Source of the DNA: Octopus bimaculoides
Taxonomy: Eukaryota
NCBI RefSeq assembly: GCF_001194135.2
Contig: NC_068989.1
Span: forward strand, 88,786,252 to 88,850,251
DNA length: 64,000 nucleotides
Direction: 5' to 3'
Position 1 is the stretch's first letter, and every line of letters begins with the position of its first letter. The position numbers and the translations under genes are program-made. Below, in pieces: positions 3,501 through 34,500 of the stretch. The notes under the pieces were generated by a model. It did no database searches. It was not told the origin of the DNA and was given only the letters and a program-made list of their open reading frames with translations.

Positions 3501-3936
3501 ATATATATATATTATTCATGTCAAGAATTTTTGTATAAAGTTTCAAGAAATGCCAGCTCACCATCTTAAACCTACAAATAATAGCATGTAAATATTGGTT
3601 GGAAAAACCCTTTTGGATAGAAAATGTCGAAAGCTGCTCGCACACAGATAGCAATTTTAATTTAATGCTGTTCCTATTGCATATACAGAGTCATATATAT
3701 ATATATATATATATATATTATGGAGATGTACTTGCATAGCAAGTGACCTGATCTGAGATCGTGTGCTAGAACAAAAACAATTGCAGCATGGAAGGTGTTT
3801 TTAAGCCATTTAAAACACATAAAAACTGTTAGATTCACTTCAACATTTAAATTTAATTTTCCCAAAATATTTTCGTCGCTTTGAGACTGTGACCTGTTCA
3901 CTGACAAAATTCCATGCTGCACACACACACACACAC

Positions 3937-7317: not shown

Positions 7318-7429
7318 TTATTTTATATCAAGGAATTGTATGTCCATCTGTAGTAAGTAAGTTTTGGGCAGTGGTCGAGGAGCTGGTGCCAGCACTGTAA
7401 ACACTTGACGCTCGGCATCAACACTGGTT
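7318..7429 (-). CDS. CLP1: CLP1 exon 13, terminal ([36 protein letters not shown])
   Basis: TTTCAG acceptor; TAA at 7320-7318; candidate AATAAA on the minus strand at 7205-7200. Confidence 0.96.
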
Positions 7430-9111
7430 CTGAAATATAAAAAATAATAAAAAAAATTTCAGTTTTGAGCCCGTTTTATGGTTCAGCTATTAAATATATA
7501 CCAGTTAGATTTTAATAACTTTTCAATTCTATAGAAGTTGAAAAATATTTTCACTTTCTTACTGTGATAAATGACTACGTAGTTAATTATCATTAGCGTA
7601 TACTTAAGAATATTTTTTAATTCTTTTATTTGTTTCAGTCATTTGACTGCGACCATGCTGGAGCACTGCCATTTTAGTCGAACAAAACGATCCGAGGACT
7701 TATTCTTTGTAAGCCTAGTACTTATTCAATCAGTCTCTTCTGCTGAACCGCTAAGTTACGGGGACATAAATACACCAACATTGGTTGTCAAGCAATGATG
7801 GTGGGGACAAACACAGACACACAAACATATACAATGGGCTTCTTTTAGTTTCTGTCTAGCAAATCCAATCACAAAGCTTTGGTCGGCCTGAGGCTATAGC
7901 AGAAGACACTTGTCGAAGGTGCCACGCAGTGGGACTGAACCCAAAACCATGTGGTTGATAAGCAAGCTACTTACTACACAGCCACTCCTGCAAATACACA
8001 GGCACCCTTGTGCATGCACAGCCTCTTAAATAAAAATATTATTGACAGTGACTTCGAAGTTTTAACCAGTTAAGAAGCCATTGTCAGACTGCCAGTTGAA
8101 GTGTTCAAAGTCATTGTTAGTAATATTCTTGTTTAAGAATAATAAACCTGTACTCGACAAAAGCATAGTGTAACCCATCCGATTAATGTAAAATTGTTTT
8201 CATTTGACGTAGGAGTGGCTGTGTGGTAAGTAACTTGCTTACCAACCACATGGTTCCGGGTTCAGTCCCACTGCGTGGCACCTTGGCCAAGTGTCTTCCA
8301 CTATAGCGTTGGGCCAACCAAAGCCTTGTGAGTGGATTTGGTAGACGGAAACTGAAAGAAGCCTGTCGTATATATGTATATATATATGTATGTGTCTGTG
8401 TTTGTCCCCCCCCCACCATCGCTTGACAACTGATGCTGGTGTGTTTACATCCCCGTAACTTAGCGGTTCGGCAAAAAGAGACCGATAGAATAAGTACTAG
8501 CCTAATAAAGAATAAGTCCTGGGGTCGATTTGCTCGACTAAAGGCGGTGCTCCAGCATGGCCGCAGTCAAATGACTGAAACGATTAAAAGAGTAAAAAGA
8601 GAGAGTATAACTGAACATAAAAACAAAGTCGNNNNNNNNNNNNNNNNNNNNNNNNNNNNNNNNNNNNNNNNNCAGAGCTGTTGTAATTGGATGTACTTAC
8701 ACAACTACAAATCCCAGCACATTCACTTCGACTAGTTTTTCTAAAGTTGTGGCTGCACTCATACTTAACACATGATGCATTAAGTTCACACCTGAAAAAG
8801 ATTCATTGAATAAATACACAATACATAAATAACCAGCACTCAAAGAGCACAAACCTCTGCCAATGCAACACCAACATCCTCTCAACGATTAACTGGAGTT
8901 AATTTTCAAAATGAGAATATCTGAAATAAAATCCTTCAATGAATATCATGAGATCTTTTGATTTTCTCTTCTCTTAAATTCCGGTCTTCCTTTAGTAATC
9001 CTGTTGTTTTAGATCGATGGATAGAATTATGCAGATATGTAAGTATACTGTAAAGTATTAAAATGTATGTATAATCTCCTAATATAATAATGAGCAGTGT
9101 CTCTTTATATA

Positions 9112-9160
<49 letters not shown>

Positions 9161-12100
9161 GACAGAGCCGGAGTGAGGGTCAAAATAAAGTACCAGGCAT
9201 GTACTGGGGTTGATGCAATTGACTAATCTCCCCCTCCCCATAAAACTGCTGACCTTCCAGAGAATGTGGGAAACATCTGATTTCAATAACACTGGAGAGA
9301 GAGATAGAGAGTGAGACAGAAAGGCAGAGAGAGAGAAAGAGAGAGGGGGACACAGAAAGCAGAGAGAGGGAAAGATAAAGAGAGAGAAAGAAAAGGAGGG
9401 AGAGAGAGAAAGAGGGGGAGACAGAAGGGGAGAGAGAGAGGGGACAGATAAAGAGAGAGAAAGAGAAAAAGGGAGAGAGAGAAGGGAGACAGAAAGGCAG
9501 AGAGAGGAAGAGAGTGAGTGAGACAGAAAGGCAGAGAGAGAGAAAGGAGAAAGAGAGAGGGGGACAGATAAAGAGAAAGAGAAAAAGAGAGAGAGATGAA
9601 TTACCTGGTTGAACTGGAACAAGTTTTGTCTTACTGTCTTGTGATTTCATTCCCAATGGTAAACAAGAATCAGGTAAATGTGGACCTAAAGACAGAGAGG
9701 GAAAGAGAGAATAATCGCTCCATGCAAAACTATTACAGGGTTGTCAAATTAATAAGTTACAACTCTAGTTATTTTAACAAATTCCTTCAAATTATCGAGT
9801 ATTTAGAAAATAAATGTTAGCTCATAGCTCAGTACACTGCTGTTAGAGTGAACTGCTAAGTTTGTTTCATCTAATTGGAATGGCTTTTCATATCTGTGTC
9901 CCTTTAAGACAATATAAGGACACAGATATTGTGTCTTATGGCCAGCTGGAAACGATGTTTCTTGGGGTTAAACATCAGTAGCAGTTGTCCCTTCCAGGAC
10001 AGCCAAATTATGTAGGCAAATAGTCTTTAGCAGAAGACATTTGTACAGAAATAATAAAATATAGCAAACCACATTCACTGAAATAAAAATACAAAAAAAT
10101 AGGGATGATACATTGTATACTGCAGTGATATTCCTACTCCAAGTCTTGATAAAAAATGGGATGGATCATAACACCTCTGACTATAGGTGTGCCTGATCAA
10201 GGTAGACCTAGGGTTAAACAACAATTGCTAAAGCTGAGCTGATTAACTGACAATCTTTTACCTTGTTGTTCTAGTCATGCTGGGGCAACCACCTTTAGTC
10301 AAACGAATCAATACCAATGCTTATTTTTTTAAAGCCAGGTACTTATTCTATCAGTCGCCTTTTGGCGAACCACTAGGTTACAGGGACATAAACACACCAA
10401 TGCTGGTTGTCAAACGGCAGTGGGGGACAAACAGACACACACACACAGACGGGCTTCTTTCAGTTTCCATCTACCAAATCCACTCGCAAGGATTTGGTCA
10501 GCCTGAAGCTGTAGTAGAAGACACTTGCCCAAGAGGTCACGCAGTGGGACTGAACTTGGAATCATGTAGTTGGGAGGGCAGCCTTTTACCATACAGCCAC
10601 GCCTACGACAAAGAGAAAAAGTAATAGAATACTCACCCCCTATTTTGTAAATTTTGACATCAGTGAACTTCACCTCAAACGAATGAGGAAAGTATGTGTT
10701 TCTGATTCCATAGAAATATTCCCTGATTTTGCTGTCACGGCTTTCTGTTCTGCTGTGGGCGTTTCTCTCAACGACCTGATAACAACACAATATTAACACA
10801 CACATTATATATATATATATATACCTGGCATTAGGAAGGGCATCCAGCTGTAGAAACTCTGCCAAATTTAGATTGGAGCCTGGTGTTGCCATCCGGTTTC
10901 ACCAGTCGTCAGTCAAGTCGTCCAACCCATGCTAGCATGGAAAGCGGACGTTAAACGATGATGATATATATATTCTTTTATTTGTTTCAGTCATTTGACT
11001 GCAGCCATACTTGAGCACTGCCTTTAGTCGAGCAAATCGACCCCAGGACTCATTCTTTGGAAGCCTAGTACTTATTCTGAGATATTTTGCTGAACCGTTA
11101 AGTTACGGGGACGTAAAGATACCAACATCGGTTGCCAAGCGATGATGAGGGTACAAACACACACATACATATATATATATATATACATACATACACACAT
11201 ATATACGACCGGCTTCTTTCAGTTTCCATCTACCAAATCCACTCACGAGGATTTGGTCGGCTCGAGGCTGTAGTAGAAGACACTTGCTCAAGGCACCACA
11301 CAGTGGGACTGAACCTAGAACCATGTGGTTGGTAAGCAAGCTACTTACTACGCAGCCACTAGAAAGAGAGAGAGAGAACAAATGGCTAAGGTCAGTTTGG
11401 GTGTGAAGCTGGGGTATTTGCAGAGAAGCAATCAACCCGAATGCTGGGCTATCAGCATTGTCGTGATCCAAGCTAAAGCTGGAATACTTCTGGTGTAGAA
11501 AATCCAAGTTTCACAACAATTATACCGTCATATGCTTTGGCAAAGAGCAAATAATCCAATGAAAAGAAGAAGACAAAGAAAATTCTTTAAGACATCTTTA
11601 ACTATAAGTTACAAATGTTTCCGTACCATCTCCGTTTGCAACACCAGTTTACATGAAAATTCTAAAAGAAAAATCGTGTAATATTTGCAGTTTTAGACAT
11701 TGAAGAGGCACTTCCTCAGACTTGCATTTCTGCCAGCTTACCAACTTCTTTCAGCTTCTGTTTACATAATCCACTCACAAGATTTAGCCCAGGGCTATTG
11801 TAGAAGACCCCTGCTCAAAGTGCTGTGCAGTGGGACTGAACCCAAGATCACATAGTTCTGAAGCAAGAATCTTTACACAGCTGTGTCTGTGTGTGTATAA
11901 AACAGCTAATAGTTTGAGGGGTGGGTAAAATGTGAGAAAGAAGTCCTGATTCCTTACCCCTCCAGATTTTGGCAGCAGGATAACTTTCACGAAGTCTGGC
12001 ATATCTCGCACCAATTCATTGTACAATCTCTCTTGGTCTAACACTGCTATGATGTCCACTGAAAATAGATAACAAAAACGGTATGATGTGTGAGTGACCA

Positions 12101-15100
12101 CAACAATGTTCTAATAAAATAATTAATAAGAATGCCTTTCGAGCGTTTGGCCTCACGGAGGAATGACTGAAACCATTGGCATTATGTCAGGCTTGAGAAG
12201 ACCCATTAAACCAAGCAAAATCACAGTCATGGTAGATACCAGTGTTACGCAAATAGGCACCTGTGCCAGTGACACATAAACGCACCCCGGTGTCACACAA
12301 ATAGGAGCCATGCTGGTGGCATGTAAAAGCACCCACTACACTCTTGGAGTGGTTGGTGTTAGGAAGGGCATCAAGATGTAGAAAACCATATCAAATCTGA
12401 CTGGAGCCTGGTGCAGCCTTCCAGTGTGCCAGCCCAGTCAAACTGCCCAACCCACGCTAGCATGGACAACAAACATTAAATAAATGATGATGATGAATTA
12501 CCATATTAAATTACCTAAAAGATGCAAAAGCATATTAAATGAACCACAACTGCAGAGGTGCAGATTCACAAAAAACATTTTTTAGTGTAATTAACCCTTT
12601 AACATTTAATCCTTTCATTACTGTATTTATTTTGAGATGCTCAAAGAATTTAGTAAAATAACTTAGTTAACATTAAGCTAGTGTTAGGAAGATAAATTGT
12701 GACTAAAGTTTGGTGGAAGATTTTAATTCAAAACTTATGAAAATAAGATGACGAGGGTTCCAGTTGATCTGATCGACGGAACAGCCTGCCTGTGAAATTA
12801 ACATGCAAGTGGCTGAGCACTCCACAGACACGTGTACAGGCACATTCAGCATGACACAGAGTGTGACATGGATGGCCCTTTGTGGTGAAAGAGTACAGCA
12901 AGGTTCACCACTACCCCTTGCCAGAGCCTCACGGAGCTTTAGGTGTTTTTGCTCAATAAACACTCACAATGCCTAGTCTGGGAATTGAATCTGCGATCCC
13001 ATGACTGCAAGTCTGCTACCCTAAACACTGGACCATTGCACCTCCACAGAACACACTAGTATGAAGTTGAAGTAAAAAATAGATTCCTGTTGTAGATCAG
13101 GACTTATTTGATCCTTCACCTTTTACTAATGATGACAATAACAACAATGATTTCAGATTTTGGCACAAAACTAGCAATTTGGGAGAAGGGAGTTAGTCGA
13201 TTATATCGACCCTAGTGCTCAACTGGTACGTGTTTCAGTGACCCCAAAAAGATGAAAGGCAAAGTTGACCTCGGTGGAATTTGAACTCAGAACATAAAAA
13301 AAAAAACCAGATGAAATACCACTAAGCATTTTGCCCAATGACCTCACAATTCTGCCAGGTTGTCATCTTTGTTATTGTAGTAGTAGTAGTAACAATAACA
13401 ACAGTGATTTAGTTTGACTGGAGATAAAACTCATTTGGTGAAGGAGAGAAGATATATTTATAGCTGAGTAAATTGAACCTAGTAATTTTAATTGATAAAA
13501 TTAATATACTTTAATAGACTGACCTTCAAATGCTCCAGCTGTATGTACTAGCGATTGATAACCTCCACCTCGTACCCAGCCACTTGTGTTGATGATGACG
13601 CCACTGAGGTTAGCTGAAACAGAAAACCAAGTAAATAAATCATCCATCCAGACACTGGAACTGTTTGCAAAAATCAATATGGCCTACTTAAATTAAGGAA
13701 CAAACTAATCCAGACAAGAAGAATTTAATAGAGACACGCGCATGGTTGTGTGGTTCAATCCCACTGTACAGCACCTCAGGTTGACCAATACCTGGGGGGG
13801 GGGGGGATTTAGTAGATGGTAACTGTGTAGAATCCCACCAACACACAAACACACATATATGTATAAACTTGTTTACCGACCAAAGCCTTGTGAGTGGATT
13901 TGGTAGACGGAAACTGAAAGAAGCCCGTTGTATACATGTATATATGTGTATGTGTGTGTGTTTATTTGTGTGTCTGTGTTTGTCCCCCACAGCATCGCTT
14001 AACCGATGGTGGTGTGTTTACTTCCCCATAACTTAGTGGTTCGGCAAAAGAGACCGAGAGAATAAGTACTAGGCTTCCAAAAAATAAGTCCTGGGGTCAA
14101 TTTGCTCGACTAAAAGGCGGTGCTCCAGCATGGCCGCAGTCAAATGACTGAAACAAGTAAAAGAGTAAAAGAGTTCAAATATACTTGGGGCATACCTGAA
14201 CCCGTAAGAAAGACATTTGTCATGGAGATAAGTGTAAACCAGTAGATCCCAAACATTTTCAGGCTGCTGCTCCCTTAACCGCTATTCCACATTCCTAGCG
14301 CCCCCACCACAAACATGGACCGCCTTCTGCAGCAAATTCAAAACAACTATTTCACAAAAATATAACCTAACCTAATTAATCCATTATTTTGGTCTTTTTC
14401 CAACATCCATTGCCCCCTTTTGGCCACCCCATTATCATCCCACTTTTCTTCAATGCCCCTTTGGATCTTTTCACCGCCTCCAAGGGAGCAAAACCACCCA
14501 TTTTGGGAACCACTGGTGTAAACACACCAAGTCAGCTTTCAGTGCCACCTAACCAGACTGTTGCATACATGCATTCTGGAGGGATTATCTCCTCCCTTCA
14601 GCAATGAAAACCAAAAAGGTAGACACTGCGAACTGACAGGAGAGAGAGGTCCCTCTTATGATATTCCCATCATTGTTCAATAAAATACAGAGTGACAGCG
14701 CTAAGCGGTGATGTGTATAAATACAAACTTGTAACTGGTAACAAGTTTTCTACACATCACTGCTTAGCACTGTCATCCCGTATGTATATATCTACAGATC
14801 AAACCAACAGGCCATGCACTTTCAAAAAGTAAAAGAGAAATACACACACACACACACACACATATAATATATATATATATATATACTTACTTTTCTTATT
14901 TGCCTCACATTTCAACTGGATTACTGATGCTAGTCTACTGATGAGGAGGTTGTACAGAGCAAGGTTTTCATTGGGACTAAAATGGCCAAAATGGTAGACA
15001 ACAGGTGCCACGGACTGGATGAAGCCATCTTCAATATCTGCAGGTCTTTCTACAACTGCTGCCGCTGTTAATAGGAAAAATTGTACAGTTTAGTTTCAAA

Positions 15101-18100
15101 CAAGGAACAGGATGGAAGTTAGGTTAAATTCTAATACATAGTATGAAGTATTTTCATTAACATCATCCACGACACATGTTGTGACAGGCGAAATACCACT
15201 AAGCATTCTGTCCAGCTCACCGCCTTAATAATAATAATTGCCATAAGACTTACCCAGGGTACCAGGGATTGAAATCATACTCTGGAAACAAAGAAAAAAC
15301 AAACAATTTAGTGATCATTCACAATTTATTTGACATAAGAAAAGTAATCAAAGAAATCAACTATGACATTTGTTTATTGATTTAATGTTGTTTCCATGCC
15401 AAGATGGGTAGAAGACAGACTTACTGAGGCAGCATTTTACAACCAGGTGCTCTTCCAGTTGCCAACTCTTACCTGTTTGTCAAATAAAGGATTTCTTATT
15501 CCACTACTTTTTGAATGTATAGAGCAATTCATCTTAATGTCAGTGGCTCTCATGGCTTCTGACCTTAACTGATAGGAAGTATTAACATGTACATGCTTTG
15601 TCTTGTTGTAAAACAGGGATCACAGCAAATATTCTGCTCAATACCACAGAGTTGCTTGTCAGTTGTTTGACCGTAACCAGTTGAGCTTGTCCCTTAGTGG
15701 CTGACGATATGTACATCTCTGATCACGAGCAGAAGTAGTGGGGGAGCATCATAGCCACGTGTTGAGAGGAAAAGCCTTGCAGAAAAATCAACAGCACCAT
15801 TTGATTTGCCACAGAGAGGAAGACTAGCTACCTTTCCCTACCAAAGGAAAGGGATTAATTCTTACTCTGATGGCTGAATTCATCCTACATGCAACAACAG
15901 CTGTTTAACACAAGACCACAAATCAGTAATGCACAGACACTAAATGATAATATGCAGAGCAGTTTTGTCAAACTGCTCTGCATTTCAAACTGGTTTGCAG
16001 TTGGTATTTCCAATGCTTAAGCCAAGTAATGCCCTACATCCTACCCACCTCCTGTAGCACTGCTACGACAAGGACTTTTGGAAGTTATCCACAGTCCCCA
16101 ATTTGAAAGTTCTTCAGAAGAGACTGCTCAGGCTGTTCTCGTTGATGCCCAGAGCCATTCCCAGACAGTCAGATACAGACTCAGAACGGTAAGGAATGCA
16201 ACAATGATTACTAACATAAACACAAGACCACAAGTTCCAGAGGAAGAGAACCGCTAATCTTCATATCTCCTGAACCTTATTTTGTTGACCCTGGAAGAAT
16301 TAAAGATAAAGCTGGCATCTACAGTATTTGAATTTATAAAGATTGCTACCTTCCAGATTCAACGACTTGTGATCAAAAGCATTCCAGTCATGACCACTCT
16401 GTCTTTGTTACATATATGACCACTTCACGGTCCACTGTGTTCTTCCTATTTTTGAGGTACTAGTAGTGTAAAAAAAAAAAAACATGTAAGGTTGGATTGG
16501 TCGTGGTTGGCATGCTTTTGACCATAGTTCTGCTCTATTACGGATAATTAGGGACTGAAGAACAAAAAAAAAAAAGTTCCAGAATGGAATAATTGATTTG
16601 AAATTGGGGTGTGGGCAGGTTGTGAGAGGTTAAGGACCAAGTTCTCTACTCACTTGTCCAACATCAATATCCACAAATAATGGGGCATGGCCAGCTCGTA
16701 CACAATAATTCAGGAACAGCTTACAAACGGTGCTTTTACCAACATCCTTAGGTCCAACAATCATGATCTGCAAAAAGAAAAAAAAAAAAAGGAAAAAATA
16801 TTTAAAAACACATGAAACAAATTTATAATGATTTATTTATAACAGAAACACAAGGAGAGAAATGTTGAGTGAGGAGGGGACAGTCACGTCAATTGACTGG
16901 GACTCATTTTATACCCCGTCCCACAAGAATGTAGAATTAAGTTGCCTTTGGTGAGATTTGAATTCATTTATCAAGCACAAGGAGAAAAATATGACCACTG
17001 CTTGACAACTGGCGTTGGTGTGTCTACATCCCCATAACTTAGTGGTTCAGCAAAAGATACTGACAGAATAAGTGCTAGGCTTTAAGAAATAAGTCCTGGA
17101 GTCAATTCATTCGACTAAAAATTCTTCAAGGCAGTGCCCCTGCATGGCCACAGTCTAATGGCTGAAACAAGTAAAATATGTGTAAGCACATTTATCTTCA
17201 TTTATCTTGGGAATTTGGTCACCACAAAACACTGATAAATGAATCCTCTCCATGCACTTTGCAGAGGGGAACAAATGGTAGATTCATTGACACCAAATTC
17301 ATTGCCCCACAACAATGAAGCTTCCGCTTTCATGTATTTCTTTGCTCATCTCTACATTTTTCCTGTAAAGAATATCCTCATCTGAATCATTTTTCACGAT
17401 TAAACACCTTCATATATTTCCTATCCACTGGTCCCATGTTGACTGGTGTGAGAGCATAAATCTGTATAAAAAATACATGCAGCCTTGCAGCTCAATTACG
17501 TAAACACAGGCAAAGATCAGTTCGTTCTGGGTGGCCACTGGGGCACATTTTTGCAGTACATACATAATCTTCAATGATCACCAAGCCATGTTATTCTAGA
17601 TCAAATCTATTGGTAAGTGTAACACAGTTCACAACTAAGCATACCATACAGTTCTATATTTAAGAGATGAGGAATTCTGTACATTATTTACATTATTTAC
17701 CTTCAACAGATATTTGTCCTCATCTTGTTTGTTGTTAACACAACACACTACGCCATATGCCCATGGACATATGGTGTAGTGGTTAAGAGCGCGGGCTACT
17801 AACCCCAAGATTCCGAGTTTGATTCCAAGCAGTGACCTGAACAATAATAATAATATTGAAAAATACCTTAGGAATGAGAACCCGGTTTGAAATTTCCCCG
17901 AGACACCTGATGAAGGCTGGAGGGTATATCAGCCGAAACGTTGTGTTAACAACAAACAAGATGAGGACAAATATCCATCGAATGTATATAATGTAAGCAT
18001 ACCATGTTTTCCTGGATCAGTGATAAACAAGACAACATGCATTTACTGTAGTCTTATCATCTAAGGCTATTGAACTTTCATCTCAAGTCCAACCTCCTTA

Positions 18101-21100
18101 GATTAGACCTCACCACTTTCTCCCAAGTCTCATCCGACATATTTTTCAGCGCCATCTATCAGTCATCCTTCACACATACAAACACACCACGTCCATACTA
18201 GTGTAGTCTTCTATCTTGCACATTATGGCACATACCAAACTGTTATCGAAACAGCAACAGAAAGAGGGTTGGAAAAACAGTGAAGCACACAAGGTCTGGA
18301 TCAAGAAGTACTGGGACTGTTGCTATGGTAACAGAGCTAAAATACACAGGGTGAAGCTGCTTGGCATGGAATGACCCTGAATTCTGTCACACTGAGTTAG
18401 AACACGCTCACCCGCTCCCGTTGCTTATGGCAACACTTGAAAGTAAAGTGTGTAGAGTATGGTTATCTCGAAAAGAAGGTTGGGTTTCAGATGTTCAGGG
18501 TCGCCTTGATTAAGATGGAAACTTTTGTAAAGCAATCATAACAGGTGATGAATCATGGGTCTATGGTTGTGACTTTGAAACCAAGATATAAATCAAAATC
18601 CCACTTGAAAGGAACAAAATTTCAAGACATCGAGGAAATCCAAGAGAATGTAATGAGGCTCACTATCCCCAGAAAAGGAGTTCTAGGAATGCATCCATCA
18701 ATGGAAACGATGGCTAGATAAAGGGTGTGGCTTCAGAAAGGGACCACTTTGAAAGAGATTAAATGCTAAATCAATGATCAGAGTCGTAGGTTTATTTTTC
18801 TAGCACCAATCCCAATACTATTTGATCAGACCTTGTATGTATAAATCTGTAGCTTTTAATAATGAGGTGAACTCAATCAATTATGGGATACAATTTTAAT
18901 TAACCAGAAGTAAGCAAGGCTGTAGGAATGATGATGATGAGAGAGAAAGGGGGAGAGAGTACAGTTACATATATGTGTGCAAGGATATATTTGTAGCTGT
19001 ACATATTTTGCTAATATATAAATAGTAAAATAAGATAAAGAGAGACAAATGTGACAGATGAAAAGTACTCACCCTGGGTCCAGGAGTCAGCTCTTCACTG
19101 GCCTTCCGTTTCATCTGTTCCAATGCTCCATGGACATTCAAGTACATCACCATTGGAGTTTCCTTTGAGACATAAGCCATTTCAGTCTTACCAATTAGGT
19201 AACAAAGAATTAAGGACAAATTTACAGAGAGGTAGAACAAAAACAAAACTAAAGAAAAAAAATACATTCAGTGTGCTTGTTCCCAAGACAACCAGAAATT
19301 TATGCTGGATTAGAACCAGCATCACCAGGGCTAAAATTAAACCATAACACTGCTTGATACTGGTTTCAAAGTCATCCAGTTGTTTGATTTACAGAATCAC
19401 AGATTGTTCCAAATAGAAGCTAATTATTCTACAGTCACTAATACGTTAGATATAATGTGGAAACAGATTGAGAGTGGTACCAAGAAGGCTGGTTCTGTGA
19501 ATCACATGTAAAATCAATCTAATGAACCACTACAGTCTCCATCAAGCAAACACTATTGGCCGTTGCCAGTACCGCCTGACTGGCTCCCGTAGGATTTTTG
19601 AGCGAGATTGTTGCCAGTGCCCCTGGACTGGCTCTTGTGCGGGTGGCACATAAAAGACACCATTTCGAGCGTGGCCGTTGCCAGTATCGCCCGACTGGCC
19701 TTCGTGCAGGTGACACGTAAAAGCACCTACTACACTCTCTGAGTGGTTGGTGTTAGGAAGGGCATCCAGCTGTAGAAACTCTGCCAAATTTAGATTGGAG
19801 CCTGGTGTTGCCATCCGGTTTCACCAGTCCTCAGTCAAGTCGTCCAACCCATGCTAGCATGGAAATGCGGACGTTAAACGATGATGAGATGATGATGATG
19901 ATGATGATATATATATATATATATATATATATTAAACTCAACTCTGTCAGTCACGAATGACAATGGGTACACCTAAGGGGTTCCCTTCCGGGATACAAGT
20001 GTGGGCAGAAAATTGCCTCACCAGTGTATGCACAACCTAGGGTTGTTTTTATGGAAGACCAGCAGTCGCCCATGCATACCAGCCTCCTCTCTCCACACCA
20101 CCAGTGTTATCCAATGGAAAGGCAAAGGGGCCAATACAGCTTGGCACCAGTGATGTTGCAACTCATTTCTACAGCTGAGTGAACTGGAGCAACATAAGAT
20201 AAAGTGTCTTGCTCAAGAACACAACACACAGCCCGATCCGGGAATCAAACTCACAACCTCATGATCGTAAGCTCGACGCTCTAACCACTGCGCCATGCCC
20301 CTTCACACACACACATATGTAGGCACAAGCATAGCTGTGTGGTAAGGAGTCTGCCTCTCAACCAAATGGCTTTGGGTTCTGTTCTACTGCATAGAGCTTG
20401 AAAAAATATCTTCTACTATGGCCCCTAGGCTACTGTAGACTGAATTTGGTAGATGGAAACTAAAAGAAACCCATTGCGCGCGTGTGTATGTGTGTATGTG
20501 CGCACATGCATATGTGTTACTGTTTCCATGCCTTGAAGTCATGTGTTGGTTGTAAATTGGTGTCACTGTGATGCAAGTGGTGTCCTTTGTTTTCAATGTT
20601 CTGTGAAAATGTTTGGTGATGGAGAAATTTGACCTTACTTGGAAACAAAAGCTGATGACAAGAAGGGCATCTGTCATAGAAAATCTGCCCCAAGAGATTC
20701 CATCTGAACCATGCATGCATAGAAAATTGGGCATTAAAATGACGGTATATATACATACACAGAGTCACAAAGATTTAAGATTGATTTTAGTAGATGAGTT
20801 ATCAAATCCCATCGGCAGAACTATCCACCCATTGAGCTATAGTCTGAAAGGCTGAACATGCTGTCAGACAATTGTACCCTTAACATAATTCTCAAACACA
20901 ATCTGTATCAAAACTGGTCTTTTGAATTACAACTAAATCTGTCCCACATGCTCCTCACAATGTCAGTCAATTCCATTCACAAGGATTGGGTTGATATGAA
21001 CTTAAAGTAGAAGAAGCACAGTAGGATCAGCCCCTAAACATCAAAACCCTTAACCACAGTTGTTTCTGTATCCATGAACACATACACACACATGCAATAA

Positions 21101-22473
21101 AAGGAAACAAGTAGCTAATAAACACATAAAAGGATATTTTGATGCTGCATCCATGCCATGTGAAGACAGCTAACTTTGAACTTGGCAGGAAAGTGGCCCT
21201 CTTCCCCTTCACCAGTTCTGTACCAAACACCTCTGCTTTCCCATCTGTCAGCTGCAAAAGATAATGAAAAATTTAATACAAGTACTTGACAAAAGTTTAT
21301 CCTTTAGCTGAGAGGGGGAGGAGAGGTCAATAAAAGAAGTATTACTCAAATACTGGAGCCTGATATAATAAACTCTATGTCCTACAAAATCTGTAGTCTT
21401 GTGCCAAATTTAGCAAACTTGAAGACAACATAATATTAAAGAAAACATGTTCATGTTAGTCATCATTATTATTATTATTATTAGTGATGCAATCAGTATT
21501 ACTGTATTATCTAAGGGGGCAAGCTGGCAGAAACATAAGCACGCTGGGCGAAATGCTTAGCGGTATTTTCACTTTTTTAAAAACCTGGTACTTATTCTAT
21601 TAGTCTCTTTTGCTGAGCTGCTAAGTTTCAGGGACTTAAATACACCAACACTGATTGTCAATCAAAACACACACACACACACAATGTGCTTCTTTCAGTT
21701 TCCGCCTAAATCCACACGCAAGGCTTTGGTTGGCCTGACACCATAATAGAAGACACTCACCCAAGGTGCCATACTGTAAGACTGAACTTGGAGCCATATG
21801 GTTGGGAAGCAAGCTTCTTACCACACAGCCACGCCTGCACCTATACGGGAAAAAATAAATAATACAATCCTACGTATTCCGAGAAAAGGGGGATAGTCAT
21901 GACTGGAATGTTTTTGATTGTAGGTTTGCTTCATCAAAGTAGAAGTGTAGGTAAACACCAATAGTGATAGTGTCTGGATTCCAGAAACTACTCACATGCT
22001 ATTGACTAATTGACTAATTACTTGAGGTGATTGACTCCTCTCATTTGCAGTAGTCATAGTCTATTAATTAAAACACAATAGCAGGAATTGCAGGAGGCGG
22101 CGAGCTGGTGGAAACGTTAGCACGCCGGGCGAAATGCTTAGCAGTATTTCATCTGCCGTTATGTTCTGAGTTCAAATTCCGCCGAGGTCGACTTTGCCTT
22201 TCATCCTTTTGGGGTCGATTAAATAAGTACCAGTTACGCACTGGGGTGGATGTAATCGACTTAATCCCTCTCTGTCTGTCCTTCTTTGTCCCCTCTATGT
22301 TTAGCCTCTTGTGGGCAATAAAGAAATAAGGAAATGCAGGAGGTTAATGTTCACTGGAAATACAAACACAACACCATATTTTCTAGCTCAGGTGATCTCA
22401 TGCAATTAAGAGAAATAACAACTTTTCACACACACACACAAATATTGATTTCTTTCATAGCACAAAGCCTTGT

Positions 22474-22514
<41 letters not shown>

Positions 22515-25362
22515 AGAGAGAGAGAATAGAATCAATTATACAAACTTCAGTCCGTGAATATAATTCTCTACTGAAGCCAGTTAAGCATACGTATTTTTTA
22601 TCTTTTACTTGTTTCAGTCGAATGAATCGACTGAGTAACATATTATTTTTTAAGCTTGGTACCTATTCTATCAATCTCTTTCGCCGAACCGCTAAGTTAT
22701 AGGGATGTAAATACATCGACACCAGTTGCCAAGTGCTGGTGGGAGACAAACATCGACACAGACACATGCACACAACAGGTTTCTTTCAGTTTCCATCTAC
22801 TGAATCCACTCACAGGCTTTGGTCAGCCCAAAGCTGTAGAAGATACTACTCGCTCAAGATGCCATACAATGGGACTGAACTTAAAAACCATATGCTTGGG
22901 AAGCAAGCTTCTTACCACACAACAATGCCTACACCTACAGGCAACTATATAAACCCCAGTCCTTAAATGCAATTCTCCACTGAAGTCATTCAAACACTTT
23001 TTTAATTTTTTTAAAAATAACAATACATTATTCACGAGATAATAACAAAGATGGGAAGATTAAATCAGTAGAGATCCGTTTAAAAAGAGACTGTATCATT
23101 GTGTCACTCAAAGAAGACACAAACTAAACATAAAGAGCTAATTCATAAGTAGATATGAGAACTGGGAGCATTTCACATTAATGGCCTTAAAAACCACACA
23201 GGACAATTGACATATTGACAATTGACATATTGACAATTGACAATTGACAATTGACAATTGACAATTGACATATATTTTCAACAGCTGGCCTGTCATGGCG
23301 TTTATGTCTTTTCTTGTCTCTTAGAAAATTTATTATAAACACAAAGTGAAGCTTTATCTAACAAAAAGTTTAAATAAAAGGCTAACATGTTTAACAATGG
23401 ACAACTTGTGTAATCTATTAGATCATCATCATTCAATGACTACTTTTCTCTGCTTGCATGGGTTGGATGGAATTGAGGCAGATTCTCTATGACTGGATGT
23501 CCTTCCTTTTGTTAATATTCATCTGTTTCCAAATAAGGTAATATTTCCCCCATGACAAGATGTGTTTTTGTGAAACACTGAAAATGAAGGACATTGTTTT
23601 CATGACAGTGATGATCATTTACAAACAATATGATGCAAAGCAAAGAGACTGTAACACACATACAATGGGCTTCTTTCAGTTTCCATCAACCAAATTTCCC
23701 ACCCATGCCAGCATGGAAGGCGGACATGAAACGATGATGATGATGAAATTCACCCACAAGGCTTAGGTTGACCTGGAGCTATAATAGAAGACATTTGCCT
23801 AAGATACCACACGGTGGTACTGAACCCAGAACCATGTTGTTGGGAACCAAACTTCTTACCACACAGGCATGCCTGCACTTGGTAATCACAGGAGAACTGC
23901 GTAATACTAATCCAGATGGTGAAGTTCACTTCACAATCATGAAGTTCCCCGAATAATTCCACTGTGCAAAAGCTCATGATATGCATTATATATGTTCTTG
24001 GGTTATAACCATAACAGAAAAATCAATTTAACACCACTGCCTGGCATCTGGCCATCTTTAGCAGAGTTCACTTACAAGCATGGAAAAACATATAAACCTG
24101 AATCGTCCAAATTATTCTCCCTTCTTTGGCATGTTGTTGGACAAATTTAAAGTCTAAAACCATGTCTTGACTCTGTGTAACTGGTAATAATTGTAAATGA
24201 GTATCACTGTCATACAAGCAGTGTCCTTCATTTCCAATCTTCCATGAAAACATGTCTAGCCAGGGGTAAATATTACTTCACTTGGAAACAAGAGACTGCT
24301 AGTGATAGGAAAGGCATTTGACCATAAAAAAAAAAAATCCATCTCGACAAATCCCATCTGACCCATGCAATTATGGCAAAGCAGACATTAAAAAGCAATG
24401 ATAAAACCATTTGTCTTTTTTAATGTAGAAGTATCAAGATATCAAGAAACTTTTCTGCCAAAGACTTCATTTTACATCAAAACAATCATAACCATATCAA
24501 TCAGTTGAATATAGTCTTCTTTCAGGGAAATATGACTGGTATCTATTGCCAGTGAGACCCCTACTTAAATACAAGCAATTATATATCAGCAGAGCACAGC
24601 CAAAATATTTATTTCACAGAGATATTGTTTAGAGACCTCTTTGTACCACATCTGAACCTGTTAGCTTACTGCCAAAATCAGATCCATTTCCCATGTTTTG
24701 TTTTTAATTAATTTTGAGAGGGTTCACCTCTGCTGTGTTTCTTGAAAGGACCTGAAGAAACTAATAAGTTTATCTCTCCACAGATGTAATTTTAATTAAA
24801 ATTTCTTTGCTCTCCATATTAAGTAGGTCAGTACCAACCTTATTTTTTTTCATACCAAACATGTCCCTAAGTATTTTTCTCCTTTGTCTTCAAGTCAGAT
24901 TATTACAGCATATACATACATATATATATATTCACCTTTCACCCTAGACCTCTTTCAAAGCTCATCTCATAATATTGCTAAATTTTATCTATTCTTTTAT
25001 GCTTCTATTAGTTTCAGTTGTTGGATTGTGGCCATGCTGGTGCACACTCTTAAAGGGTTTAATCATACAGACCCCAACATGGTTGTAAGACCAATGTCAT
25101 AAAACAGCAGATATGTTAGAAACACATCCATTTTGGAAAGCAGCAGCTGTGTTAGAAGCAGCCATGGATGAAAATGTTGCAAGTAAATTAAATAACATAC
25201 AGACACAGGTGTGGCTGTGTAGCTAAGAAGCTTGCTTCCTAAGCATATGGTTTTGGGTTCAGTCTCTGTGTGGTGCTTTGGGCAAGTGTCTTCTATCATA
25301 GCCCCAAGCCAACTAGAACTTTCAAAATGGGTTTGGGAAATGGAAACTGAAAAGAAACCCAT

Positions 25363-25394
<32 letters not shown>

Positions 25395-28300
25395 CGCTTG
25401 TCTTAACATTGTGCAATGTATCACACCTTGGGGATACATGGCCATGGGGAAATATTACTTGGAGGCAAGTGCGGGTTGGTGACAGGAAGGGCATCTGGTT
25501 GAAGAATGCCTCAATAAATTTTATTTGTCTCTTGCAAGCATGGAAAATTGGGCATTAAAATGATGATGATGATGATGATGATGCATGTATCACAAGCCAT
25601 CTTTGTCTATGTATTTCAACTCCTCAGTCACCGAGGAGTTGAAATAAGATTGAGACATGCCCACAATTCTCACTAACATGAGACTTATAACAAAGGCATT
25701 GCTCACATTCCATTTTAATTAATTTCAACTAAGATTCTGGAACCATTTCCCCTGCCTTTGTTAGCAAGAATTGATCATTAAGCTAACGATTCTTTCACCA
25801 TACCACAGCTGCAAATATAATTAAAATTTCTTGTTTCATTTCAGTAAGCCCTTCAGCACTGACTTTGCCATGTCATGACTTTATTCACATATATTTTCAA
25901 AATCAATGAGTAAAAATAGAAAATAAATACACACAGACACACACACCCTGCGCTTTTGTATATAAAAAGAAAACAAGAAAAGAAATAACATATTATGACT
26001 CGGGGGAAATTTGTAAACCAAATAATTTCAATGTTATTTTTATTTTCCACATTTTTAGGTGACAAAAATATATTGTAAGCACAAAGTGAAAGTTTATCTT
26101 ACAAAAAGAATTACCAGAAATGTATTTTAAGCTCTAAACAATAACTTTTATATGACACAACAGGGCTGATATTGTCAAATATATATATATAAGGCTATTT
26201 CATTTTGGAGCAGAAGGGGACACGTCATTGAGGAGGCCATACATGGCAATGAAAGGACTTTGGCAAATACAACTGATTGATTGATTAACCAAATGACAAA
26301 TAATAATGAAGTAAAACTGAACCAGTGGGTGTGTTTCTATGATTGGCTTTGCTCATCATGCCATCATCGTCCAGACACTCCTATCTGAATCATATCTCTT
26401 TCTCCCATCATCCTTGTCGTATCCGTGGAGGCACAATGGCCCAGTGGTTAGGGCAGCGGACACGCGGCTTCAATTCCCAGACCGGGCGTTATGAGTGTTT
26501 ATTGAGCGAAAACACCTAAAGCTCCACAAGGCTCCGGCAGGGGATGGTGGTGAACCCTGACCACAACTCTTCCACCACTACTTTCTCTCACTCTTACTTC
26601 CTGTTTCTGTTGGGCCTGTAATTCAAAGGGTCAGCCTTGTCACATTGTGTCACGTTGAATATCCCCGAGAACTACGTTAAGGGTACACGTGCCTGTGGAG
26701 TGCTCAGCCACTTGCACGTTAATTTCACAAGCAGGCTGTTCCGTTGATCGGATCAACTGGAACCCTCGATGTCGTAAGCGACGGAGTACCAACAACAACA
26801 ACCTTGTCGTATCCAACCCACCCCAGGTCCTGCACTAATCCCCATATCATGTCCTCCCTTTCCAGAACATCAACCATTTGAAATTCTTTCCCTGCTCCTA
26901 CTTTTCTCTTTCAAAGGTTCAAGAAAATAAATGGCATTAGTCTCACCAGTTTAAGAGAGCTTGTCACGAGCACTGACCCTTTCTCCAGAACCAGCCAGAA
27001 AAAAATAAATAATTAAAACATTAAAATAAACTCTATTAAACTTCAAACACACAAATAAAATTGCTAAAAAAATTCTCTTTTGACAACTGCTTACTTCCCC
27101 TTTCTAACTCCAAATATCAAAATTGGAAGCAGACATCATGTCACTAATTAAATATTGAAATTCGAAGCAGGTGTCATGCTAATGTACTAAATTATTCAGT
27201 AATCCATGAATAATGAATGATATTAATACAATTGCTGTGGTGTGTGTGTGTGTGTGTGTGAGGAGGGGGGTTACTTTCATAGAGTCAGCATTAGTATCTA
27301 AACCATACACTTCACATTGACCTGAAAGAAATAAGAAGGTACGTCCCCCTCAAATCTTACTCACCCACCTTAAAAAAAACAGAAAAAATAAAGTCGGGAT
27401 ACATTGAGCGATATTGCCCGAGATACACTATAGCCGCAAACAAGTCAGGATGGCCACATCTGGAATACTTTTGATCGTAGGCCTGTTCAATCAGGTCTGA
27501 TATTTGGAGCAGAATAACAATTAGCTGAAACGCTAGCATTCTCTTTGCTCCAGTTGCATTCTGCTCAACACAGATAACACACACACACACCTTTTGACTA
27601 GCTTCATTCAGTAGGTCATGGCCATGCTTGGGCAGTGCTATTAATGTATTCATCTGTTATTTGTTGTGTTAAATGAGGATAATTGAATATCATTTTGGAA
27701 ATACCTACTCATAAATGAATTACAAATCTTCCTAGAGCTATTGTGTAGTAATCTGACAACAACACAGGACTAATTACTCCAGTCTCCTGCTTGGGAAAGT
27801 TCTTTATTATGGACTTAGGCTAATGAAAACCGATTGAATGAATTTGGCAGAAAATGAAAAAAGCCCATCATGTGTGTGTGTGTGTGTTCTGAGTTTAGTC
27901 CTACAATATGCCCCCAACCACCAACCCATCAGAACTATAAGCAATAAACTACATTAGTCAACAGATGCAAACATAGCTGCATGGTCACAAAATTCAATGG
28001 ATTGACTGAAAAGGCGAACATCCTCAAATTTTCATCAACATAAACTGCTACAGGTGTAGCTGTGTGGTCAACAAACTTCCTTCCAAACCACTTGGCTCCA
28101 GATTCATTCTCACAGTATGACACCTTGTGCAAGTGTCTTCTACTATAGTACATCATCATCATCATCATTTAACGTCTGTTGCCCATGCTGGCATGGGTTG
28201 GATGGTTTGACTGGGCTCGTCTGCTGGAAGGCTGCACCAGATTCCAGTCTGATTTGGCAAGGTTTTCTACAGCTGGATGTCCTTCTTAATGCCAACCACT

Positions 28301-31300
28301 TCAAGAGTGTAGTGGGTGCTTTTACACGCTACCAGCACAGGTGCCGTGTGTGTGACACTGGGGTGTGTCTATGTGCCACCAACACAGGTACCAATTTGCA
28401 TGACACTGGTATCTGCCACGACTGTGATTTTGCTCGTCTTGATGGGTCTTCTCAAGCATGACATAATGCCAAAGGTCACGGTCATTACCACTGTGAGGCC
28501 CAACACTTGAATGAAACTCAGCCACTTTGCCTCTGTCAGGCCCAACATTCAAAAGATGTTCTTTACGTGTCACCAGCACGGGTGCACTTGGCTTGACGAG
28601 TCCTCTCAAGCACAGCACATCACCAAAGGTCTCGGTCACCAGTCATTGCCTCTATGAGGCTTGAAGTTCAAAGATCATGCTTCATCACCTCATCCCATGA
28701 CTTCTTGGGTCTACCTCTACCACATGTTACCTCGACAGTTCGAGATTGGCACTGCCTTACACAGCTATCCTCATCCATATGCATCACGTGACCATACCAA
28801 CTTAGTCGTCTCTCTTGCGCAACACATCTGATTCTTCTTATGCCTAACTTTTCACTCAAGATGCTTACATTCTGTCGTTCATGGACACTGACATTGTACA
28901 TCCAGCAAAGGATACTGATTTCATTTCTCTCAAGCCGACGCATGTATTTGCCCATGTTTCTCATTACCATGCAGCATAGCTGTTCACACACAGGCATCAA
29001 ACAATCTGCCTTTCACTCTGAGAGAGGTCCTTTGTTACCAGCAGAGGTAACTCTCTAAACTTTGCCCAGCTTAATCTTATTCTCACAGCTATGCTCTCAA
29101 AGAATCCACTTCCACTACTAACTTGGTCACCTAGATAATGAAGGCTATCTACTACCTCTAGCTTGGTTTCTGCATATTTTTGGTATTTATTGTATCTGTG
29201 CACCTTCCACATACAAATGTTAATTTCCCTGTTAACCTTCCTCTCATGTTACTGCACCTTTTATGTGTCCACACACACACCTTGTGAGTGGATTTGGTAA
29301 ATGAGAATGGAAAGAGGCCTATTATGTGTGTGTGTGCATGTGTGTGTGTATAAAAATCAAAATCAAAATGGAAATTGTAGTTGTGGCCAATGCCAGTGCT
29401 GCCTGACTGGCACCCGTGTCAGTGGAATGTAAAAAGCCCCATTCAAGTGTGGGTTGATGCCAGTGCCACCTGACTGGCTCCTTGTGCTAGTAGCATGTAA
29501 AAGGCACCATCCGAACATGGTTGATGCCCCCCCACAACTGATTGGTTCCTGTGCCGGTGGATTGTAAAAAGCATCATCCAAACGTGGTCTATACCAGTGC
29601 CACCTGACAGGTTCCCGTGCTGCAGGCACATAAAAGCACCCACTAAGCTCTCGGAGTGGTTGGCGTTAGGAAGGGCATCCAGCTGTAGAAACCTTGCCAG
29701 ATCAAATTGGAGTCTGGCGCAGCCTACTGGCTTGCCAGTCCCCAGTCAAACTGACCAACCCTCGCCAGCATGGAAAACGGATGCTAAACGATGATGATGG
29801 TGATGATGATGTGGCTATTTGCAATTTAGAACCGAAAGGCAACAAGTAAAGTTGTTACTAGAGCAATATACACATGTATATTAGTTGGTGTCTCCTTGTC
29901 TTGACATCATGCGATTGCTGTAAATGAGTGTCACCATCATACATGCAGTGTCCTTTGTTTTCAAAAGTCCATGAAAATATGTCCAGCCATTGGAAACAAG
30001 GGTTGGCAACAGGAAGGGCATCCAGACATAGAAAACCTGTCGCAACAGATTCCGTCAAACTGATGCAAGAATGGAGAAGAGGACATTGTAAAAAAAAAAT
30101 AAATAAATAAATAAATTGGTGTCCATTCTCACCATCACTCGTCAAAAGCAGTGCAAACCACTTGTTAATTGTTTTCCATGACAACATCTATAAATATCTG
30201 AGCACTTGTGTGTGTGTGTGCAAGTTAAACATCATGTTTACAATTTCAATACAATAAATTAATTATATGAGTGCATTAGTCAATTAGTTATGTGATTAAT
30301 AAATTATATATTAAGCGTTTATATTAGAGCCAGTACAGTAATGCAGAAATCTGCAAAGCACTTTGCAGATTTTTAAAAATATTATTCCAAGACATTACAA
30401 AATGTACATTAATGCTCAAGTGTCTTGTTCATAATTTGGTTATTCACAAGAATGCACAAGAAGAGGAGGTAAACAACAATTGGGAATAGCTGATTGGACA
30501 TTGAACCTGTTTTGGTGATAACACTTTTTTGGACAGGAGGCAAACACCCACAAACACACATCATCATCCTCATCGTTTAATGTTTGTTTTCCATGCTGGC
30601 ATGGGTTGGATGGTTTGACTGAGGTCTGTAGAGCCAGCAGCTGCACCAGGCTCCAATCTGATTTGGCAATGTTTCTACAACTGGTTCGTGTGTCACATAG
30701 CTAGCTAGAGTCGATGGCCTCTTGGAGCTAATCAACGGCAGCATTCGTCCTATGTTATGGACTGCCATGCTGGCTTGGCGATAACTATTGATATCCAGTA
30801 CCGCTGCCGTAGTCTCTGTTAGAGAAACTTAGAAATATTAATATTTCTATTTTATATAACAGATATGAATATACACATATACATACATGTATATATGTGT
30901 GTGTGTGTGTATTATATATATATATATATATATACATACACAGACAAAAAGATAGATTGATAGATACAACTGAGTGGGCAAACAAAACTATGAGACACTG
31001 CCTAGTGCTTTTTTTTTATTTTGATAAGCCTGGTACTTATTCTATCAGTTTCTTCTTGTGAAACCAGTAAGTTATGGGGATGTAAATAAACAAACAGCAG
31101 TTGTGAAGTAGTGATGAGGGAGAAACACAGAGACAAAGACACACACATATATACATGCATATATATATACGATTGATTTCTTTCAGTTTCTGTCTACAAA
31201 ATCCACTCACAAGACTTTGGCTAGTCTGAGGCTATAGCAGGAGACACATGCCAAGTCACCACACAGTGGGACTGAACACAGGACCATGTGTTTTGGAACC

Positions 31301-31423
31301 AATTTTCTCACCACACAGCCACACCTGCACCTATGTATGTGTGTGTGTGTGCATGTATATGAGTGTATATATGTGTACATATTACATCTATATATATACA
31401 TGTATACATATACAGCTAAACAT

Positions 31424-31506
<83 letters not shown>

Positions 31507-34500
31507 CACATAACATATATTATATATATGTAAGAATGTATATATGTATGCCTATGTGATATAATAGTTTCACTTTAATAGTTTCAGTATTAAAGTGAAA
31601 ATATCTGACATTACAATAGAGAGATGTTATTGTTTCCCTTTTGACACGTAATACTGCAATAGTGGAGGAGATGTGATATTGTACTGGGCTCGCACTAGGC
31701 AAGAAGTGAAAATTTTTTTTTGCCTAAAACACTACATGGACCCTAAGTAAGGCATGTGTAAAATTTGAATGAAATTAGTTATGTAGTTCTCAAGTTTTAG
31801 GGACAGGCACACATTCTTATCTATATATATAGATTACTCGCAGCATTTGACGAAATAGATATAGCTTCACACGATGTGGAAGACAACTGGAGTTTTCTAC
31901 GGGACAACCTGCTCAGGGCCAATGACCAGATCTGTGGATGGTGCAAAGTCCCCTCTCGACCCAAAATAACATAGTGGTGAAACAATGTTGATGTTGCTCA
32001 ATAAAGAGAATGAATGGGAGAAAGAGAGTCTGCCGAATGTCAACCCAACAGAGGGACCAGCTATCTGAATTGACAGTACCTTGGTAGATAAAGCAATTAA
32101 GTGTATGAAGACAGGGAAAGCTCCCAGCCCATCAGGAATCAACGCAGAGATGCTCAAAATATCTGGCGGTGTTGGCTATAGCTTAGTCACTCGTATAGCT
32201 AACCAGGTGATACACGAAGGAGTCATACCCAATGACTGGTGTTAATCCCTTTGTCTGTCCTTGTTTGTCCCCTCTATGTTTAGCCCGCTATGGGTAATAA
32301 AGAAATAAATATTTTAAAATGAGTGGATCAGAGTTGTTAAGTTTTCTGGATTGCAAAGCAGTGTGTCTAAGTGAATCAAGATGTTATTAAGGGGTAAAAG
32401 TGAGTTTAAAATGACAGTGGTGCACTTCCCTCACTGATGCTAAGAAGAAAATGGTTTGGAAATGTTATGATGAGAGGCTGGTGACTGTGATGGATATGTG
32501 GGAAGAAACAGGTTTACTCCAAATATATCCATCTGAGGGACCAGCTAAAATAACTACTAAGGATATGAAGTTAGGAAAAGCTGCTACCCCTGGTAGCTAC
32601 TAGGTAGGGCTCAAATTAGTCATTTGCATAGGCAATTAGGGAGTTCAGGCTGTAATACTGAATGACTAGCCTAATGTTATCAACAAGTGCTACAAAGGCA
32701 AAGAAGAAGCCCTAGAAAGAAGCAGCAACTGCAGAGGGATCAAACAGATGGACCAAGTTATGGGCTACTACTGATGCCTTCTCCCTAGAAAAGGGACTGC
32801 AAAAGAACTTCTTAGCTAAGACTGAGACCTTCTATCGAGCTTTTATAGACCTGTGATACAATACCAAGCACTGTAATCTGCTGGTCATTAAAAAAAACTA
32901 AGTGTAGATGAATAGCTTGTGAGAGTAGTGCAAGGCATGTAGAGAGAAGCAGTCAGTAAAGTGAGAAATTTTGTGACAAGGTAGGCGTTCAACTCTTTAG
33001 CATTCACATTATTCTCTCAAATGTAATACTTGTTTATTCTTGTTGTTTTGAACCAACCATGTATTATCTTGTAGCTTCAAGATTTCAATGATGTGACTGT
33101 TTTAGCATTATGTCGTGCTTGAGAAGAAGACCCATCCAGCTGAGCAAAATTGCAGCCGTGGCAGACACCAGTGTCATGCAAATGGCACCCGTGCTGGTGG
33201 CACGTAAAAGCACCCATTACACTCTCAGAGTGGTTGGCATTAGGAAGGGCATCCAGCCATAGAAAACCAGACTGGATCCTGGCGCAGCCTTTCAGCGTGT
33301 CAGCCCAGTCAAACTGTCCAACCCATGCCAGCATGGAGAACGGACGCTAAACGATGATAATGAAGACATTGTAGGGTAGGTGTGAGAGGTCAAATCTAGT
33401 AAGTTTGAACATAAAAGAAACTATTTTGGTTGGATATGGCCAGTTTAAGTGCTAAAGGGCTATTTATTGTGGTTCTCCAGGCCATAAAAGAAGAGTTTAA
33501 GACTGGATGTCCATGGAAATCCTTCTATAGGCTGATGAGTTAGTATTTATAACTGTATCAGATAGAAATCTGAAGAAATTCCAGACATGTAAGCAAAACC
33601 TGGAAGTAAGAAATTTTCAAAGTAAAACCAGTGAAGAACAGGATCCTGCTGCCATAAGGAAAATGGTTGTGTTCAATTTGCAGAAAAATATAAAGTAGGA
33701 ATTCTATATGGTGAACCCAATGTGAACTATGACAGCACAAGATGTCACGGGATCACATGGACAAGTACAAGTGACTAGATATGAACTATCAAACTCATAG
33801 AGTGTTATCTAGGAGCATACAATTTAGTCTCATATGCTCTCCTGCAGTTAGTAGTTTTTTTTTTACTGTTAGTCAGGGATGGGGGGGGGACAATGATCAC
33901 AACTCTTTATTTTATAGGGTCTTCAAGACTAAACAGGAGGAAGGAAGACCTTAATCTCAAATTTGAGACCTGGTTTTAAAGGCTTGTAAAAGCGTGAACA
34001 CCACTGAAGATGCTAGGTGATGGTGCTAAACCAGGTAACAAATTAATCTACCATCCAAGAGCCCAGAATGCAAAGAACCAGAAATACAGCAAAGCATCTC
34101 ATCCAATGCTGTAACCATTCCGTATGTACACCACACTGGACTGGTACCTATATTATCAATATCAAAGAGATAAAAGGCAAAGAAAGTCAAAACAAATACT
34201 GCAAGCCCCGCCCTCTCTTGTTATGTTTCAATGACTTGACCAATTTGTTAAAATGACAAAAATAAATGAATAAACAGGATGAAATGTTTTTGAAGTTTAG
34301 AAACCAACCTCTAACTCTACTTCTGCTCCACTGTCCACCTCAACTCGAAGTTCAGATAAAGGTTCAAGCTTGTACTCTTCTGTGTGTGTAGTCTGAAAAG
34401 AGAAAAAAAAAATTAATACTTTGCTAACTTCTTTACTGTGTTCTATTAGATCTAGATCAGGTGTTCCCCACCCCCATTGGATCGCGAAGCCTAAGCAGGG

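Follow-up and report, generated by a model that had tools for sequence, protein, structure and literature searches.

A conserved AT-AC intron of probable U12 type in the CLP1 gene of Octopus bimaculoides

CLP1 (or Cbc) is a polyribonucleotide 5′-hydroxyl-kinase, a subunit of both the tRNA splicing endonuclease complex and cleavage factor IIm. In the cephalopod Octopus bimaculoides, its gene lies in a stretch of 64,000 nucleotides (nt) (RefSeq assembly GCF_001194135.2, contig NC_068989.1, positions 88,786,252 to 88,850,251; hereafter ‘the window’), which is 100% identical over its whole length to chromosome CM046609.1 of assembly GCA_001194135.2. Intron 3 of this gene begins with AT and ends with AC, and the question raised by this locus is to which class of introns it belongs, how old it is and what its removal would demand of the splicing machinery. 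Judged by its sequence, it very likely belongs to the AT-AC subtype of U12-type (minor-class) introns and is placed between coding exons 3 and 4, because its splice signals stand at the exact positions, the junction is unique and the position is conserved in ten species. The initial annotation of this DNA had already called a U12-type AT-AC intron in CLP1, and that call passes the sequence tests and is confirmed by a position shared across six phyla.

The exon structure was obtained by exact spliced alignment to the window of the public protein XP_014774939.1 (UniProt A0A0L8H6R6, 428 amino acids), to which the product encoded here is identical. Domains on record for this product are CLP1_N, CLP1_P and Clp1 (PF16573, PF16575 and PF06807), so that the kinase architecture is complete, with the N-terminal domain, the P-loop kinase domain bearing a Walker A motif, and the C-terminal domain. 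The product matches annotated Clp1 with E = 3e-203 and is 57–68% identical to other animal CLP1 proteins; compared with the known kinase, the octopus protein is unremarkable. The gene contains 12 introns, of which 11 are GT-AG introns with pyrimidine-rich acceptors, intron 3 being the sole one with other termini (Table 1).

The junction of intron 3 and its splice signals

Read on the minus strand, exon 3 closes with the codons ...AGC ATC AAA and exon 4 opens with CTAATTGG (also given as CTAATTGGTAAGACT). The join 21138^19198 yields ...FTWHGCSIK/LIGKTE... in frame (slashes mark splice points throughout), and when split points were searched regardless of dinucleotides, exactly one reproduced the CLP1 protein, namely that with AT...AC termini. 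On this strand, the coordinates and exon numbering of the initial annotation are all right. The intron starts with the putative 5′ splice site ATATCCTTT and, near its other end, carries the branch-point sequence TCCTTAAT, whose candidate branch adenosines (19211/19210) lie 11–12 nt from the intron 3′ end, with TCTTTGTT between the branch box and the terminal AC. Thus, all the features that define the U12-type class at the sequence level were found: the 5′ site, the branch box, the termini with the reading frame, and the orthologous position. The intron resembles known U12-type AT-AC introns in its full ATATCCTT consensus, its TCCTTRAY box 9–14 nt from the 3′ end, its AT-AC termini, its solitary status among many GT-AG introns, its residence in a housekeeping gene and its deep positional conservation; nothing structural sets it apart from the class. 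Phase 0 is under-represented among minor introns, and CLP1 intron 3 is a phase 0 intron. The biases at the −1 nucleotide, related to the phase bias, are absent from the AT-AC subtype (PMC7367187).

Could such motifs have arisen by chance? In the window, ATATCCTT was observed six times (3.06 expected) and TCCTTAAY-N6-12-AC five times (2.24 expected), which is about twice the chance expectation in both cases, yet within the range of shuffled sequences. Significance from the counts alone was rejected for this reason, the argument being one of exact placement and conservation: the chance of finding both motifs at the exact ends of the gap in protein homology is approximately 4e-10, that is (3.06/128000) x (2.24/128000). 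A second ATATCCTT occurs at 18981-18988 (minus strand) in intron 4, and TCCTTAAC-N-AC occurs at 16619-16636 (minus strand) just inside intron 5, each away from any exon boundary. These stray motifs are chance occurrences, and the motifs alone are not diagnostic.

Proteins and assembled contigs also bear on the use of the junction. The RefSeq/UniProt protein of O. bimaculoides uses 21138^19198, and in other cephalopods assembled contigs of ~1.4–1.95 kb encode full-length collinear CLP1 (409–441 amino acids) across the junction. These contigs are most likely transcripts and, being full-length and collinear, they imply that a collinear mRNA exists among cephalopods.

Several points weigh against the U12-type assignment. 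Pyrimidines make up 70% of the final 30 nt of the intron, which makes a U2-type contribution possible on composition alone. Use of the junction in O. bimaculoides itself is drawn from the RefSeq model and from homology, and from the intron's sequence we infer which spliceosome would act, together with any kinetic or regulatory effect. Finally, a scan of the window against Rfam at gathering thresholds gave 0 hits of any RNA, small nuclear RNA (snRNA) genes included, a result that is uninformative either way.

Table 1. Features of the CLP1 locus, in coordinates of the window
Feature	Position	Strand	Remarks
CLP1 coding region	7318..35852	−	ATG 35852..35850, TAA 7320..7318; 13 coding exons, 428 amino acids
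Coding exon 3	21138..21251	−	114 nt, phase 0-0; 38 residues; upstream acceptor ordinary (...ttttgcag)
Intron 3	19199..21137	−	1939 nt, phase 0, AT-AC termini
Putative U12-type 5′ splice site ATATCCTTT	21129..21137	−	9/9 to the minor-class consensus
First in-frame stop (TGA) on intron 3 retention	21027..21029	−	36 codons into the intron
Intron 3 interior repeats	19610..20740		interspersed repeat copies, >20 recurrences elsewhere in the window
Putative U12-type branch-point sequence TCCTTAAT	19209..19216	−	fits TCCTTRAY
Terminal AC of intron 3 (3′ splice site)	19199..19200	−	
Coding exon 4	19073..19198	−	126 nt, phase 0-0; 42 residues; followed by a strong U2-type donor (AGG/GTGAGT)
GTAAGA in exon 4 (TTG/GTAAGA)	19186..19191	−	7 nt into the exon; codons GGT AAG (Gly-Lys); resembles a U2 donor
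Coding exon 5	16654..16767	−	contains the P-loop (Walker A motif) GPKDVGKST; situated downstream of the stop met on retention

Conservation across animals

The initial annotation had proposed dating the intron by comparing CLP1 gene structures, and this comparison was carried out on orthologous loci, in each of which the junction was placed by exact match to the species' own protein. An AT-AC intron stands at the same phase 0 codon boundary in ten species, with ATATCCTT invariant at its 5′ start. The carriers are the cephalopods O. bimaculoides (1939 nt), Octopus vulgaris (1451 nt), Octopus sinensis (1449 nt) and Argonauta hians (755 nt), the gastropod Haliotis asinina (669 nt), the brachiopod Lingula anatina (365 nt), the annelid Capitella teleta (93 nt), the scorpion Centruroides vittatus (4419 nt), the starfish Patiria miniata (1422 nt) and the sea anemone Nematostella vectensis (150 nt), which together represent Mollusca, Brachiopoda, Annelida, Arthropoda, Echinodermata and Cnidaria. 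In the nine species whose branch region was scored, a box like TTCCTTRAY (7/9 or better) is present, with the branch A 9–14 nt before the terminal AC. Nematostella, outside the scored set, has the ATATCCTTT 5′ site, a branch-type sequence TTTTCCTTGAT near the intron end (...TTTTCCTTGATAGTTCCCAC) and the terminal AC at the same boundary. In Lingula, Capitella, Patiria and Nematostella the split point can be shifted by a few bases, and at no equivalent position are the termini GT-AG. Compared between Octopus and Argonauta, the intron shows a diverged interior but has kept its 5′ site and the segment from the branch box to AC.

Since the intron occupies the same boundary in Nematostella and in bilaterians, its sequence distribution indicates that the CLP1 AT-AC intron predates the cnidarian-bilaterian split. 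In the great white shark (Carcharodon carcharias, CM029988.1, 1001-25229), the coding region of the gene comprises two exons with one intron of ~23 kb between them, and has none at the position of intron 3. Compared on gene structure, in which alone the two differ, 13 coding exons in octopus against 2 in shark indicate that introns were lost wholesale in the ancestry of this vertebrate; in at least this one vertebrate, the gene structures point to removal of the AT-AC intron and not to its conversion to the U2 type.

Within this comparison, the Lingula locus (LFEI02000266.1) shows a tandem duplicate of ~350 nt (2026-2367 and 2379-2709, 85.6% identical) that takes in exon 4 in full along with the U12 branch box and the 3′ splice site AC. 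Both copies encode the same 43 residues, and their joint inclusion would keep the frame. One possibility is a pair of mutually exclusive exons that each use a U12 3′ site of their own; another is a recent duplication.

Splicing, retention and the alternatives

In the established model for the class, the U11/U12 di-snRNP (a particle of two small nuclear ribonucleoproteins) would recognize ATATCCTTT, the 5′ splice site, jointly with the branch box TCCTTAAT, U6atac would then replace U11 at the 5′ site, the branch adenosine 11–12 nt before the terminal AC would attack the 5′ site, and exons 3 and 4 would be joined in phase 0 to give ...HGCSIK-LIGKTE.... The strong U2-type donor that closes the 126-nt exon 4 could assist through exon definition. 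Functional CLP1 mRNA would need the minor spliceosome on account of the class of intron 3, and the ‘minor-spliceosome control’ of the initial annotation stands in this trivial sense only, functional mRNA requiring this junction. A transcript left unspliced would be degraded or would encode a shortened, N-terminal part of the protein. It had been claimed that a retained intron 3 is read for 36 codons up to a stop (21029-21027) upstream of the P-loop, and this was confirmed; in the eight other species checked, the stop comes after 5–17 codons, giving a range of 5–36 codons over nine species, and always upstream of the kinase P-loop. With a stop before the P-loop, retention is predicted to be non-productive.

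Taken further, as in the stronger inference of the initial annotation, the intron might also serve as a regulatory throttle, in that slow or inefficient minor splicing, or regulated retention, would set the dosage of CLP1 and thereby the capacity for tRNA splicing and mRNA 3′-end processing. By analogy, U12-type introns in mammalian cells show ~2-fold higher retention, with degradation of the unspliced transcripts (PMC4615840); the non-productive outcome of retention in 9/9 species checked and the maintenance of the intron at least since the cnidarian-bilaterian ancestor would fit such a role. However, a pan-eukaryotic survey argues that much in the evolution of minor introns can be put down to neutral processes (PMC10639083), the U2-type spliceosome is poor at recognizing AT-AC introns, and these have mostly escaped class conversion (PMC7367187), so that their persistence is expected without selection for regulation, and the shark does without the intron entirely. 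Deep AT-AC conservation alone is no proof of rate-limiting regulation, and a regulatory role of this kind appears unlikely. Quite improbable is its bolder form, an ancient selected coupling in which the kinase output of CLP1 is gated by minor-spliceosome activity in most animals and vertebrates have escaped through the loss of nearly all CLP1 introns; if such gating were true, the Lingula duplicate of the U12 3′ splice site and exon 4 would hint at a lineage-specific elaboration.

The identity of the intron itself could be disputed by reading it as an ordinary U2-type GT-AG intron. As the initial annotation held, no GT-AG pair gives the collinear protein: 20 GT/GC-AG pairs near both boundaries are in frame and stop-free, and 0/20 restore LIGK or the conserved L-x-G-K. 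This segment is free of insertions and deletions in the alignment of 128 CLP1 proteins, with Gly in 124/128, and likewise in 191 of the CLP1 proteins matching the motif scan. One pair deserves attention since it keeps both length and frame: a donor TAT/GTGTTT after 21126 and an acceptor ...TTGGTAAG/ before 19186, the AG being that of the Lys codon, which turns LIGK into ISFY in an open, length-neutral frame. Deposited tick and whelk models of just such a shape (ISFLR-TEV and ISFIF-TEV) speak for it. Yet it destroys L-x-G-K, its donor is weak and its acceptor lies within coding sequence without a pyrimidine tract; in Argonauta, moreover, the sole GT near the intron start is 8 nt in and out of frame, and the RefSeq model and the transcript-like cephalopod contigs carry the LIGK-type sequence. 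This reading is therefore given hardly any weight.

The acceptor that a GT-AG-only model would choose is the AG within the GTAAGA of exon 4, an element resembling a U2 donor that the initial annotation had placed correctly. Its role as a conserved functional U2 donor was rejected, as it reflects Gly-Lys codon choice and is absent in Argonauta and in all non-octopus species. The codons at this site are GGA AAG in Argonauta and Lingula, GGC AAG in Haliotis, GGG AAG in Capitella, GGA AAA in Centruroides, GGC AAA in Patiria and GGG CCA (Gly-Pro) in Nematostella.

A small minority of AT-AC introns is excised by the major, U2-dependent spliceosome. Their 5′ site is U1-compatible, AT being continued by an extended consensus like that of GT-AG introns, and their branch point is distant and accompanied by a pyrimidine tract. 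That CLP1 intron 3 belongs with them is scarcely credible, since, even if it is established that termini alone do not settle the class (PMC10639083), its positions +1 to +9 form the full U12 consensus and, in the nine scored species, the TCCTTRAY box is placed 9–14 nt before the 3′ end, with the same arrangement visible in Nematostella.

Deposited models, intron interiors and the place of the finding

The initial annotation had also predicted that annotation trained on GT-AG introns would mis-model the gene. This does not hold for the octopus, where the public protein is collinear and uses the correct junction; it does hold for models in four other species. At the exon 3/4 junction, the deposited CLP1 reads ...TLE-ISFLR-TEV... 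in the tick Rhipicephalus microplus and ...TIK-ISFIF-TEV... in the whelk Nucella lapillus, both of the same shape as the octopus ISFY alternative, while ISFPN is inserted in Lottia gigantea and 20 residues starting with ISFH in Ixodes hexagonus. The tripeptide ‘ISF’ is the translation of ATA TCC TTT, that is of the U12 5′ splice site ATATCCTTT itself, and for this reason the four models are best read, from their sequences, as annotation errors in which predictors forced a GT-AG pair to repair the frame. By these footprints, the intron is likely to occur also in ticks and in two further gastropod lineages; no such footprint was found among 150 distant representative proteins, a search made at the protein level only. 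A different insertion of three residues, DLL, is seen at the same spot in Pinctada imbricata CLP1.

The middle of intron 3 is filled by at least three families of interspersed repeats, whose copies across the window (e.g. 10831-10967, 45253-45582, 3240-3512 and 29540-29811) are 67–98% identical; one 138-nt copy, at 10831-10967 just upstream of exon 10, reaches 97.8% identity. Such repeats probably account for the length differences of intron 3 among octopods. Part of the intron looks by eye like a tRNA or a short interspersed nuclear element (SINE), but the tRNA candidate was rejected, ARAGORN run on the intron having returned no tRNA. Elsewhere in the gene, an open reading frame of 110 amino acids at 28668-29000 (minus strand), inside intron 2, resembles the C-terminal part of the ORF2 of non-LTR (long terminal repeat) retrotransposons and is presumably a decayed fragment of a long interspersed nuclear element. 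Runs of N (assembly gaps) occupy 8632-8672, 51384-51619, 58612-58621 and 62689-62698, the first of them within CLP1 intron 12, which separates exons 12 and 13.

U12-type AT-AC introns have been catalogued in U12DB, in IAOD with intronIC (PMC7367187) and in Larue and Roy's pan-eukaryotic survey (PMC10639083). The latter reports many minor introns in O. sinensis, in Lingula and in molluscs generally, with an enrichment in molluscs, and is accompanied by a public database covering >1500 species (PMC10639083) that very probably already contains CLP1 intron 3. CLP1 is not among the genes in the searched supplements of a human/mouse minor-intron gene study, it is not named in the searched texts or supplements of PMC6717393, PMC10639083, PMC7367187 and PMC3291851, and a literature search found no paper linking CLP1 to a U12, AT-AC or minor intron. 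The gene would be missing from the lists of studies focused on human and mouse, because at least one vertebrate, the shark, is without the intron.

The CLP1 intron is thus a genuine, deeply conserved and newly named yet ordinary member of a well-known class, unsurprising to a specialist, and the understanding of how minor splicing works is unchanged by it. For gene annotation, it explains a recurring error in CLP1 models, and checking breaks in homology for ATATCCTT would expose errors of this kind. For the evolution of the family, it adds a clean and conserved AT-AC intron to the ancestral minor introns of animals, and its position can serve as a convenient marker of intron loss, the intron being present in Cnidaria, Lophotrochozoa, Chelicerata and Echinodermata but missing from the shark.

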